The notes beneath the pieces are model-generated. The model saw only the letters and a program-made list of their open reading frames with translations, had not been told where the DNA came from and ran no database searches. A DNA stretch of 64,000 bases from Orbicella franksi (lineage: Eukaryota). This document shows positions 60,529 through 63,711 of this stretch, piece by piece (the first letter of the stretch is position 1; each line of letters starts with the position of its first letter). The position numbers and the translations under genes are program-made. Location: positions 30,628,001 to 30,692,000 of the forward strand of contig OZ116699.1 of assembly GCA_964199315.1 (NCBI GenBank), read 5' to 3'.

Positions 60529-63500
60529 CTAATTTGGATGCAACCCAATGAATGTCACTTCCGAGTCCTTTTCTACAGCAATAGCTGCGATATCCCTGGT
60601 TGAATACATGGAGCAGGTCCCGTTATATGAGAAGCTGAAGGCATCACAAAAAAGATCTTCGGTACAGGTAGAGTTACAACTGCCCTGATCCATTCTTTCT
60701 GAAAAGTAGGCGTTTCCCTCAGGCTCCAGTTTAGCGTGAGTCAGATGCACATCCTGCAGTTTTGAAATGAATAGGACCAAATCTGATTGAGTACCATCGC
60801 TGCCATTTCGCTTCGTCAGGTTTAGATGAACGTTCACATTTTCGTCTAGTGCGCTGTAAAACTTGCACAAAGAACTTGCATGGGGCGGTTTATGGACACT
60901 GTACGTCACTGCAGTGCAGTTAGGATCTTGCAGACAAAATGAAATGCAGAGAGATTTGTCTACCTCTCGGAGATATCGGTAACCTGTCAGAACAGCAGAC
61001 TGAATGAGTTGACTAATGGATGTTATCTGTAAAGATGACACTGAAAGGGATGATACAAAAACTTTGCTCTCCAGAAAAGATTCGTTCACGCAACATTGTT
61101 CTTAGGAAAGGACACTAGATACGTAGAAATGTGTATTCTGGATAAAAGCGGTCTCATGTTGCGATAAAATATGCTTAGAAGTCTGCGTTTCCTTGTATGA
61201 GCGTGACTTTCACAATAAATTACGTTTTTTCTCCTAGGGACTTTGAAAGGTTTTGGGATATCGTTAATAGTCAGCGAAATTAAGGTTAGATATCGAATAG
61301 AAAAAAAAGTGTGTTCCCAAGGGTGCCATGATGTATTTACAGTTAAGTAGAAAGGGAAGGATTGGCAAGATATTATGTTAGTATAAGGCTACTCCAGCCA
61401 AACTGCAGCCCGTCCCTAAAAAAAATCGTCAGATGTAGTTTAATTTTGTCTTCAACGTAAAATGACAAATGAAACAAGCAAATCATACCTCTTCCTGTGA
61501 TATCGATGCCTGCAGCTTCAAGATGAAATCTGGATTCACACGAATGAACGGTTCCTTTCTTTTTCATTAATTGGCAATATTTCTGAGAAACATTGCTCAG
61601 TTTTTCTCTTACTGCCGTGTAATCAACTCCTCGTGTCAGGTGTTGGGAAAACTGTCCAGTGAACAAGTTGTCGATTTCAGAGAGCGAATACAGCATAGGA
61701 ACGGGATTCTGTTGCACAGACGACGCCCAAGTCATAGCATCGCCATTTGCAGGTGGGGTGGAGCCCACGGTAAACGTGGTCGTCTCGACAGCCTTTGAAA
61801 AGTTCGATGTTGCGTCGCTTTGTTCTTTGTCCAGAGAAAATCCTCCGCCAATGCCGAACAGCCCCGAATAACTTGCCTGGACTTCTACGCTTATTTTGCT
61901 TTTCTTTAAAGACTGATAAGCTGTTTGGCTGACCTTGTGCTTTTGGACAAACTTGGCTCCAAACGTTACATCGGTAAAGAAATGAGTTCCATAATATTCA
62001 ATGAATTCGAGGACATCTTCGTCCTTCGCGTCGGCTAGCTTATTGGCCGAGGCCAGAAAGCTTGGATCAAAAGGTGGGGGTTTTTTGAAATCAACCATGC
62101 TGTAATAGTTCTGACACTCAGCGTGGGACATGACGTATAAAAATTCGCCAGTTGACATTTCAGATGAATCCTTGTTATAGCTGGCACTGGCAGAAAATTC
62201 AAAACCCCAGCCACCACCTGTGGATCAGAAAATTGCATCTTTAGTGGCTTTTTAAGTTTTGAGGGCCTTAAAAATTTTGTTGAACATGTCAGTCTTTCTT
62301 TGGGGCTAGTTAAGGTTTATCCACTAGGCCACAATGTTTCTCTAAATCTATAAGCTGTTGGACTTTATGAATTTTCTTGTGGCTGAGTTGTTGGAAACTA
62401 TCTATTATGGCTAATTTTGACTCATTGGTTATCACAAGAATCTTAGAAACAGAACTTTCTTCTGAGATCAACAGGTTTAATTTACCTTCGACTTTAGCTT
62501 GAGCGCCAAGATGTTCAGACATTTCTTGCTTATTTCGAATCAATTTGGACTCAAACGACACCACGCAAGACTCGCTGGGGATCACAGTGAAGCCTTGAGG
62601 AACAACGTAGCGACAATCCGAAGTTTGTTTTGGTTGTGAATAATTAGCGCTGAATATAGGGTGTCTAAACCCGGGATCGCGCCCGTTAGCCAGCGGATAT
62701 CCGTAAAGGATGTCATAGCCAAGAAGACTGTAGTCTAAATCAGGAAAAGTCTTCTTCCAATGTGTTTCACTGGTACAGTCTTGTACTTGCACGTCCATTC
62801 GTACTCCTGAAATTTACAAGCAAGCAGCCCACATAAGCAGAAGAAATAAATAAAAAAAACCGATACCGAGATTGTTTCTATTGATTATCCCCCTGATTTA
62901 CCCTTAGTATATTAACAGAAAATTTCCTCCGATGTTAAACCTCTAAATGTCCCTGACTATATTTCCACGTTCATGCTGTTAACGAAGTTTGACCTCTGGT
63001 GACTTTCTGAGCAGGGACGCCTTTAAGGGCGAAAGCGCGACCCTCCTCCAAGATTACTACTTAAAACACCAAAAAGTTCCAAAATAATTCGAAAGTAGAG
63101 CATAGTTCCAATATCCAGTTTTCATTTTACACACCGATTCAGTAAAGAATGCAAAAGCTGTTTAGAAAGATTTATTTATACGAACCAAGAGTTATCTAAT
63201 CCCTTACCAAAATCGTAGTCCGTGGGATCCTTCTCTGCCTGGAACAATGTTCTCGGAAAGGCCGACAGGTTGAGAGTATCAGGGAGTTTAGATCTGAAAC
63301 AGTAGTCAACGTAGACATGGCAAGTGGTCGGAAGCACTAACGACATTAGAATATGCCTTATCTTGTTTGTCCAATGATGCTCATACAGATACGAGAAATT
63401 AATGTATTTTTCTCATGATCAAACTGCATTTTGTTGGTTTGCCATCAGTGAAATCTCTTTTTCATCATGACAAATAAAGCTCTTGGCATGAAACACCTAC

Positions 63501-63711
63501 AAATCAGCTTTCTTTCCGACATAATAGTTCTTCTAAAAATACGTTAACAACATTTTTCAACTAATACCGTTGATTTTCACATAGACATTTGCCCTTTCCA
63601 CTCGTATAAAACTCACCTGGAATGTGGGTAAAGAGTCATCACTAGACCTGCAACAATTGCTACAACCACAGCTAGCAAAACTGACAGTTTGCTATGTTTC
63701 TCCAAGTACGT
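60529..63711 (-). CDS. MACPF-domain pore-forming protein with N-terminal hydrophobic segment and two C-terminal PAN/apple-like domains; 5' end probably beyond window
   Basis: Exons 63711-63617 (TYLEKHSKLSVLLAVVVAIVAGLVMTLYPHS), 63293-63208, 62806-62486 (PDLDYSLLGYDILYGYPLANGRDPGF..), 62217-61489 (MACPF signature YGTHFFTDVTFGA), 60983-60529 (CISFCLQDPNCTAVTY..CKFY and CNSTCTEDLFCDAFSF..CSMY). Phases 0/2/1/1/1 are consistent; 561 aa in window. Confidence 0.9.

Follow-up and report, generated by a model that had tools for sequence, protein, structure and literature searches.

In a 64,000-nucleotide stretch of the genome of the coral Orbicella franksi (contig OZ116699.1, positions 30,628,001 to 30,692,000 of the forward strand; hereafter the window, with a G+C content of about 40%), we find on the minus strand, at 63717..60529, a MACPF-PAN gene. 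We consider it, with a probability of roughly 60%, to be an intact and constrained coral gene for a single-pass type II membrane glycoprotein that acts as a tethered pore-former. From the N to the C terminus, the predicted layout comprises a cytoplasmic tail, a 19-residue signal anchor, a disordered stalk of about 45 residues, a MACPF domain, a connecting helix and two PAN modules, the tail either lying off the window or being only 10 residues long. A first-pass annotation, made from the sequence alone, had seen in this gene a candidate “lectin-targeted pore-former for immunity or venom,” a functional reading that we retain in part and in conditional form. The lineage to which the gene belongs, an N-terminally tethered group of MACPF proteins with a conserved cytoplasmic motif, is undescribed in the literature that we searched, and its interest lies mainly at the level of the family.

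Gene structure, domains and constraint

The gene has five exons separated by introns of 323, 401, 268 and 505 nt (5′ to 3′), every one of them GT-AG. The coding sequence of 1692 nt translates into 563 amino acids (aa) followed by a TAG stop, with no internal stops and with exon phases that fit. The features are as follows, a slash marking a splice boundary and TMH standing for transmembrane hairpin.

63718..64000, minus strand: tract rich in pyrimidines (CCTTA/CCTAC-like) that abuts the anchor exon on its upstream side and probably forms the 3′ end of an intron
63617..63717, minus strand: exon 1, the anchor exon, encoding (MQ)TYLEKHSK, the hydrophobic segment and YPHS; it starts at the in-frame ATG 63717 or at acceptor 63712/63711 and ends at donor G/gtgagt; in alignment, both splice sites coincide with those of the annotated sixth exon in Oculina LOC144638601
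63631..63687, minus strand: hydrophobic segment LSVLLAVVVAIVAGLVMTL, 19 residues (aa 11-29), predicted signal anchor
63208..63293, minus strand: exon 2, the stalk linking anchor to MACPF (aa 35-62)
62486..62806, minus strand: exon 3, N-terminal part of the MACPF fold, holding LLGYDILYGYPLANGRDPGF and the first half of TMH1
62726..62667, minus strand: LLGYDILYGYPLANGRDPGF motif in exon 3
From exon 3 into exon 4, down to 62150, minus strand: TMH1
61489..62217, minus strand: exon 4, the MACPF core, with the remaining TMH1, the signature, TMH2 and the helix after the domain
61993..61955, minus strand: YGTHFFTDVTFGA, the YGTHF-x6-GA signature, in exon 4
61927..61787, minus strand: TMH2, in exon 4
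60529..60983, minus strand: exon 5, two PAN/apple modules and the TAG stop, with Pfam matches to PAN_1, PAN_2 and PAN_4
60769..60981, minus strand: PAN/apple module 1 (aa 414-484; C425, C429, C435, C452)
60544..60759, minus strand: PAN/apple module 2 (aa 488-559; C515, C519, C525, C536)

The start of exon 5 was placed at acceptor 60984/60983 by alignment with six relatives, which yields the gap-free junction GIDITGR/GYRYLREV and, with it, exon junctions without gaps relative to all six. Another acceptor, at 61041/61040, was rejected, given that it adds 19 residues found in none of the aligned relatives. The intron ahead of this exon (61488..60984) measures 505 nt here, compared with about 7 kb in Oculina (L001 16271..23270). 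A search for tandem paralogs of the gene within the 64-kb window found none.

Exon 4 matches the Pfam MACPF profile (PF01823) with an expect value (E) of 3.9e-26 and 93 bits (cut-off 21.5), over profile positions 2-208 of 214; exons 1-3 gave no Pfam match. The nearest solved relative in a PDB sequence search is the MACPF domain of TgPLP1 (5oup, E 4.4e-8). We examined the fold on the AlphaFold model of a 79%-identical Oculina protein (P0216) as a stand-in. This model, with a predicted local distance difference test (pLDDT) score of 80.5, displays a helix at residues 19-41 that corresponds to the hydrophobic segment, a disordered stretch at 43-75 that is equivalent to the stalk (pLDDT <50), the MACPF fold, whose helical clusters TMH1 and TMH2 span 42 and 47 residues, and two PAN modules joined on by a long connecting helix. 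A Foldseek search with the model again returned the TgPLP1 MACPF as the best match (5own, E 1e-15, 20% identity), with further matches to Mpf2Ba1, MPEG1 (E 2e-14), perforin, C8, C9 and astrotactin-2 (E 2e-10); the probability is 1.00 for TgPLP1, MPEG1, perforin, C8 and C9. The MACPF core named in the first-pass annotation is thus confirmed by profile, sequence and fold, and both motifs that it quoted are found, LLGYDILYGYPLANGRDPGF at 62726..62667 and YGTHF-x6-GA at 61993..61955.

The signature reads Y-G-T-H-F-x6-G-A, compared with a MACPF consensus of Y/W-G-T/S-H-F/Y-x6-G-G. In a family alignment of 56 sequences, the G is invariant and the A that follows it is present in at least 90%, indicating a trait of the subfamily rather than decay or a peculiarity of this gene. 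Within TMH2, the stretch KSKISVEVQAS ranks in the top 5% of beta-amphipathic 11-mers of the protein, and in TMH1 direct reading of GWGFEFSASASY reveals alternating hydrophobic and polar residues. By their length and by this alternating pattern, the two clusters appear suited to refold into membrane-spanning hairpins.

Exon 5 was tested against the PAN clan entries of Pfam (PF00024, PF08276 and PF14295): PAN_1 (36.9 bits, cut-off 21.4), PAN_2 (31.5 bits, cut-off 21.1) and PAN_4 (30.5 bits, cut-off 27) each match two stretches. An AlphaFold model of the exon, built on an alignment of 57 sequences, reaches a pLDDT of 84.6 and consists of two helix-on-sheet modules, each with one helix and five to six strands; the modelled piece carried 19 extra intron-derived residues of low pLDDT at its N terminus, and the PAN result is unaffected by them. 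In a Foldseek search of the PDB, factor XI and prekallikrein supply the top nine matches with their apple domains (E 3e-5 to 5e-4, probability 1.00), and next come the apple domains of TgMIC4, AMA1, the PAp domain of plasminogen, the N domain of HGF and an Eimeria PAN module. Single PAN modules superpose at 3.0-3.8 Å over 81-83 columns with a sequence identity of 12-20%, and the 4+4 PAN cysteines are invariant in the 57 sequences. The two C-terminal PAN modules proposed from the sequence therefore hold up both by Pfam scores above the cut-offs and by fold. Since the pair sits where perforin has its C2 domain, MPEG1 its MABP domain and PLP1 its APC-beta domain, it probably provides target recognition.

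The closest proteins are two paralogs from the stony coral Oculina patagonica, with 79% identity over nearly the full length, which points to a stony coral as the source of the window. Exon 3 is 90% identical to Oculina and is matched by 100 of 150 representatives. An exhaustive HMMER search with exon 4 retrieved 1016 representative clusters at E<=1e-3, of which 72 reach E<=1e-30; within this latter group, the PAN pair is present in 40 of the 43 representatives of at least 450 aa, and Pfam confirmed the combination of MACPF and PAN in 17 of 18 scanned relatives. Named members come from stony corals (Oculina, Montipora, Stylophora, Acropora), hydrozoans (Clytia, Hydractinia), bivalves (Mercenaria, Ruditapes, Dreissena, Mytilus, Potamilus) and a gastropod (Batillaria), with lineage-specific duplications in bivalves that have left many paralogs in Mercenaria and Ruditapes. 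Nearly all are annotated as “uncharacterized,” one Oculina paralog being named “perforin-like protein 1” by NCBI, and the protein of the gene itself was absent among the matches of both protein database searches. The first-pass annotation had raised the possibility that this architecture might be both widespread and characterised. Widespread it is, common in two phyla, so that the gene is less singular than had been supposed; our full-text search of published literature, on the other hand, found no description of a MACPF joined to PAN or apple domains, and nothing relevant on a MACPF with type II transmembrane topology.

We compared the rates of nonsynonymous and synonymous substitution (Ka/Ks) with Oculina, exon by exon. 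The ratio is 0.27 for exon 1 (anchor), 0.10 for exon 2 (stalk), 0.08 for exon 3 (N-terminal part of MACPF), 0.12 for exon 4 (MACPF core) and 0.32 for exon 5 (PAN pair), at Ks values of 0.56-1.4. Such ratios indicate purifying selection along the whole gene, with the PAN region changing about three times faster than the MACPF core.

Given that the best solved match is TgPLP1 and that PAN domains are common in Apicomplexa, contamination from an apicomplexan or chromerid coral associate was considered. It was rejected, because the gene has metazoan-type introns in common with the chromosome-level Oculina assembly and because annotations of the family exist for many genomes of cnidarians and molluscs.

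Related DNA also occurs in Tara Pacific metagenome scaffolds, one of which (L005) is 90% identical over 1.17 kb, introns included, and another (L006) 83%; neither extends to the anchor exon. The L005 scaffold aligns to 63128..61983 of the window, its similarity ends in the middle of exon 4, its other 3.5 kb shows no alignment to the window and the product called there has only 59 aa (P0079); the pattern may reflect a break in the assembly or, in a close relative, a copy that has been rearranged or truncated. In Acropora digitifera, LOC107341429 (P0274) is a partial member of the MACPF-PAN family, and this locus is listed among the genes in intervals of high fixation index (FST) between Acropora cervicornis and A. 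palmata (PMC6505131).

The N terminus and the probable membrane anchor

The hydrophobic segment of exon 1 is the sole stretch above 1.6 in the Kyte-Doolittle hydropathy profile over 19 residues (KD19 = 2.85), and by hydropathy no further hydrophobic segment occurs after residue 29. A hydrophobic run following TYLEKHSK, in an exon preceded by a strong acceptor, had been described in the first-pass annotation; the run is present, with 19 residues instead of the 18 reported, and so is the acceptor, at boundary 63712/63711, where a pyrimidine tract leads into tatatgcag/ACG (...ccttcccttaccttttatatgcag/ACG). The accompanying suggestion of an uncleaved type II anchor gains support for the family from three sources, namely an exon of Oculina, the next closest relative and a majority of surveyed relatives, and is unproven for this gene.

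In Oculina LOC144638601, the homologous anchor exon comes sixth among ten, with five exons upstream of it that encode about 157 residues. Its annotated acceptor, catgtgcag/CCA, aligns base for base with that of the window, the donor is identical, and the (CCTTG)n tract ahead of the acceptor aligns with the CCTT-rich tract of the window, while the ATG at the corresponding spot is out of frame in Oculina. Part of the segment itself, VAGLxxTLYP, is common to both Oculina paralogs. The nearest upstream exon of Oculina lies about 800 nt away and only 283 nt remain in the window; within these (63718..64000), direct reading found no open reading frame (ORF) with a usable donor, and a tblastn comparison of the relatives' N-terminal tails with the window gave no match with E <0.15. 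It is probable that the 5′ coding exons are located past base 64000.

For the next closest relative (P0240), the sequence comes from contigs without introns, obtained in several sequencing runs and probably representing assembled transcripts. Its product has 664 aa, about 95 of them ahead of the segment, and a stop lies 7-9 codons upstream of the ATG. In all seven closest relatives, 14 to about 164 residues stand ahead of the segment. The tail is highly variable between recent paralogs, as can be seen in Oculina, where one has 157 residues and the second only 23. The 157-residue tail of LOC144638601 (L001 10001..13324) carries three tandem SALGY[AS]G-x-[FV]LKG-like units just before the anchor.

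We then surveyed topology in 109 relatives with a modelled N-terminal extension. An internal hydrophobic 17-mer occurs in 65 of them, with a median start at aa 62. The 15 residues before this internal segment hold on average 4.4 lysines and arginines, compared with 1.9 in the 15 residues after it, and the count before exceeds the count after in 59 of the 65. Fourteen relatives have a signal-peptide-like segment that starts within their first 19 residues, and the remaining 30, which have no hydrophobic segment, are probably incomplete models. In our gene, 14 cysteines and 9 N-x-S/T sequons are all located C-terminal of the anchor, and every one of the 14 cysteine columns is either invariant or conserved to at least 90%.

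A further conserved element precedes the anchor. The motif [LIV][FY]x[EQ]N[IV]xL[KRQ] occurs in 27 cnidarian and mollusc relatives (including P0008, P0021, P0023, P0158-P0163, P0174, P0179, P0182, P0209, P0210 and P0214), always before the anchor and 2-62 residues from the N terminus, where it is about 10 times commoner than in the rest of the proteins; it is absent from the Oculina paralogs and from P0240. Its occurrence in both phyla marks the tail as a genuine conserved part of the protein, and the position of cysteines and sequons, all after the anchor, makes type II the best description of the family. For the family, a cytosolic N terminus and an ectodomain on the outside are therefore well supported.

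A different reading of the same segment is that the protein starts at ATG 63717 and is a soluble, secreted MACPF-PAN protein, the hydrophobic stretch being a long cleaved signal peptide and the product being released to mucus, gastric cavity or granules; we hold this to be unlikely. The ATG in question (63717..63715) lies in frame inside the acceptor, with an in-frame stop 21 codons upstream, so that the anchor exon could also be the first coding exon. A start there would leave a 10-residue tail, a 19-residue h-region and then YPHSRS, an arrangement of n-, h- and c-regions with a possible cleavage at SRS/K, six residues past the hydrophobic core. Secreted forms do exist within the family, as the 14 of 109 relatives with an early segment suggest, and MPEG1 has a secreted isoform as well (PMC7593815).

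Against the secreted form, the ATG stands in what direct reading finds to be a weak context (tttatATGc), and the same bases make up a strong acceptor, homologous in position to the one annotated in Oculina, in which the ATG is out of frame. The residues ahead of the segment in all seven closest relatives, the conservation of VAGLxxTLYP and the Ka/Ks of 0.27 of the anchor exon also speak for an anchor, and 19 hydrophobic residues are long for the core of a signal peptide.

In weighing the tethered pore-former, we count as evidence against it the in-frame ATG with its upstream stop, the signal-peptide layout and the secreted relatives, together with several properties of the analysis. Topology was inferred from hydropathy and the positive-inside rule; most relatives are automatic gene models; and lysines and arginines around the gene's own segment number 2 before and 2 after, which is uninformative. 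For this gene, the anchor is likely, though unproven.

Possible function and other features of the window

If the protein is a tethered pore-former, the anchor would place its N terminus in the cytosol, with the MACPF-PAN part facing the cell surface or the lumen of a secretory or phagosomal vesicle. The PAN pair would replace the C-terminal membrane-targeting domain of other MACPF proteins and bind a glycan or a protein on the target, after which the MACPF domains could oligomerise and the TMH1 and TMH2 clusters refold into beta-hairpins to yield a pore. The disordered stalk of about 45 residues could give reach to an opposing membrane or be cut to free the ectodomain, and such proteolytic release from the flexible stalk may precede pore formation, as proposed for MPEG1 (PMC7593815).

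Both the pore and the targeting by the PAN pair are inferred, and two points belong on the negative side of the balance drawn above: the signature has G-A in place of the canonical G-G, and the astrotactin-like membrane-bound MACPF proteins are not known as pore-formers. The first of these also speaks for a second alternative, in which the protein would be a membrane-bound, non-lytic MACPF serving adhesion, matrix organisation, signalling or vesicle trafficking, roles put forward for astrotactins, BRINPs and Torso-like and for the mesoendodermal NveMACs of Nematostella. The resemblance to astrotactins extends from membrane attachment to the fold match with astrotactin-2 (E 2e-10). PAN/apple domains are often protein- or matrix-binding, with factor XI and prekallikrein as the top fold matches here, and the conservation of the cytoplasmic motif across phyla suggests intracellular partners. 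In addition, MACPF paralogs of Nematostella have developmental roles (bioRxiv 10.1101/2023.10.30.564692). We nevertheless regard a non-lytic protein as doubtful, given that the closest solved relatives (TgPLP1, Mpf2Ba1, MPEG1 and perforin) are proven pore-formers, that TMH1 and TMH2 are of canonical length (42 and 47 residues) and alternate between hydrophobic and polar residues, and that the lineage-specific duplications of bivalves and the faster evolution of the PAN exon are both more typical of immune effectors.

For a tethered pore-former, the most likely role would be epithelial or phagocytic defence, or microbe management, rather than that of an injected nematocyst venom. The one item of expression data that we found comes from Hydractinia, in which LOC130635919 is reported to be expressed in “Conodipine+” venomous epithelial cells without nematocysts (bioRxiv 10.1101/2024.06.18.599157), and this locus encodes a family member composed of tail, transmembrane segment, MACPF and PAN (P0209). 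Such expression outside nematocytes, taken with the abundance of the family in molluscs, favours defence over injection. [quoted passage not shown]

MACPF pore-formers are central effectors of immunity and attack, and for MPEG1 and the astrotactins there is continuing debate on how tethered ones spare their own cell and reach the target membrane (PMC7593815). A large invertebrate family that tethers the MACPF by the other end of the chain, and in which targeting has been swapped to PAN/apple modules, would offer a natural comparison for this question. The family is also relevant to reef-building corals, in which it may bear on the handling of microbes or symbionts, and to commercially important bivalves, in which it has expanded.

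Elsewhere in the window, we noted the following reading frames.

51202..55302, minus strand: uninterrupted ORF of 1366 aa, with no Pfam match and no PDB sequence match
14445..15038, plus strand: ORF of 197 aa with a NADAR domain (PF08719, E 5.6e-13)
41711..42304, minus strand: ORF of 197 aa that includes a run of 144 N (41858..42001), the run being next to an ORF of 298 aa at 42168..43064, minus strand; no Pfam match for either ORF
39321..40514, plus strand: ORF of 397 aa, no Pfam match

The first 900 or so residues of the 1366-aa frame contain 28 N-x-S/T sequons, along with GGA/GGV-type motifs that recur in a manner recalling beta-helix repeats; aa 800-930 are cysteine-rich (12 cysteines), and aa 929-1340 hold about six to seven hydrophobic segments and no sequons. 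By this composition, it looks like a large glycosylated ectodomain joined to a multi-pass membrane region.

Comparison with known MACPF and PAN proteins

Within the same phylum, MACPF proteins are known as PsTX-60A/B, AvTX-60A and NveMAC1-7. Their descriptions, a signal peptide together with one MACPF without a PAN pair or internal anchor, set them apart from the coral protein, in which the PAN pair is found, and from its relatives, which have the internal anchor. Perivitellin-2 (PV2) of Pomacea is similar in coupling a MACPF to a carbohydrate- or ligand-binding targeting part, being a lectin joined to a MACPF (PMC7082926), and one Mercenaria member of our family has been automatically named “perivitellin-2 67 kDa subunit-like.” In PV2, the MACPF subunit is disulfide-linked to a separate tachylectin-like chain and the whole is a soluble egg toxin, whereas here the PAN pair lies in the same chain as the MACPF and the protein is probably membrane-bound.

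The PAN modules have their fold and four-cysteine core in common with factor XI, prekallikrein, TgMIC4, Sarcocystis SML-2, plasminogen and HGF. Their tandem arrangement is that of factor XI and MIC4, while the third, apple-type disulfide is absent from both coral modules. The ligand of the coral pair may be a sugar, like those of MIC4 and SML-2, or a protein, like that of factor XI.

Among MACPF proteins, sequence and fold alike point to TgPLP1 as the nearest solved one. Micronemes secrete PLP1, which has a C-terminal APC-beta domain. The coral protein differs in its C-terminal PAN pair and in being probably anchored, and the fold search with its C-terminal part returned PAN/apple structures only. 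Astrotactin-1 and astrotactin-2 provide a parallel in topology, their MACPF being on the lumenal or extracellular side and held by N-terminal hydrophobic segments. Both belong to vertebrates and carry EGF, FnIII and annexin-like domains, and neither is known as a pore-former; for these three kinds of domain we obtained no Pfam match in the window pieces or in 18 relatives.

A further close parallel is MPEG1 (perforin-2), likewise a membrane-tethered MACPF with a lumenal or extracellular ectodomain, a C-terminal ancillary domain, a short flexible segment adjacent to the membrane and, in the cytosol, a tail that may bear sorting signals. The fold match noted above (E 2e-14, from the P0216 model) comes with an identity of only 11-13% in the structural alignment. 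MPEG1 is built from a cleaved signal peptide, MACPF, EGF-like, MABP (P2) and L-domains, and a C-terminal type I helix and tail (PMC7593815). In the coral protein, by contrast, the sole hydrophobic segment is N-terminal and the ancillary domains are two PAN modules. The C-terminal 150 residues consist of these modules and include no hydrophobic helix, and neither MABP nor EGF gave a Pfam match in the window pieces or in the scanned relatives. The topology opposite to that of MPEG1, as claimed in the first-pass annotation, calls for a qualification: the two proteins have their anchors at opposite ends of the chain, and the ectodomain faces the same lumenal or extracellular side. As a tentative extension, for which we see rather less than an even chance, the family could be an ancient cnidarian-mollusc lineage of N-terminally tethered perforin-like proteins, in which trafficking would be governed by the cytosolic motif and the choice of target, be it a microbe, a symbiont or a prey surface, would fall to the fast-evolving PAN pair, and which would form, beside MPEG1, a second and independently built tethered pore-former.

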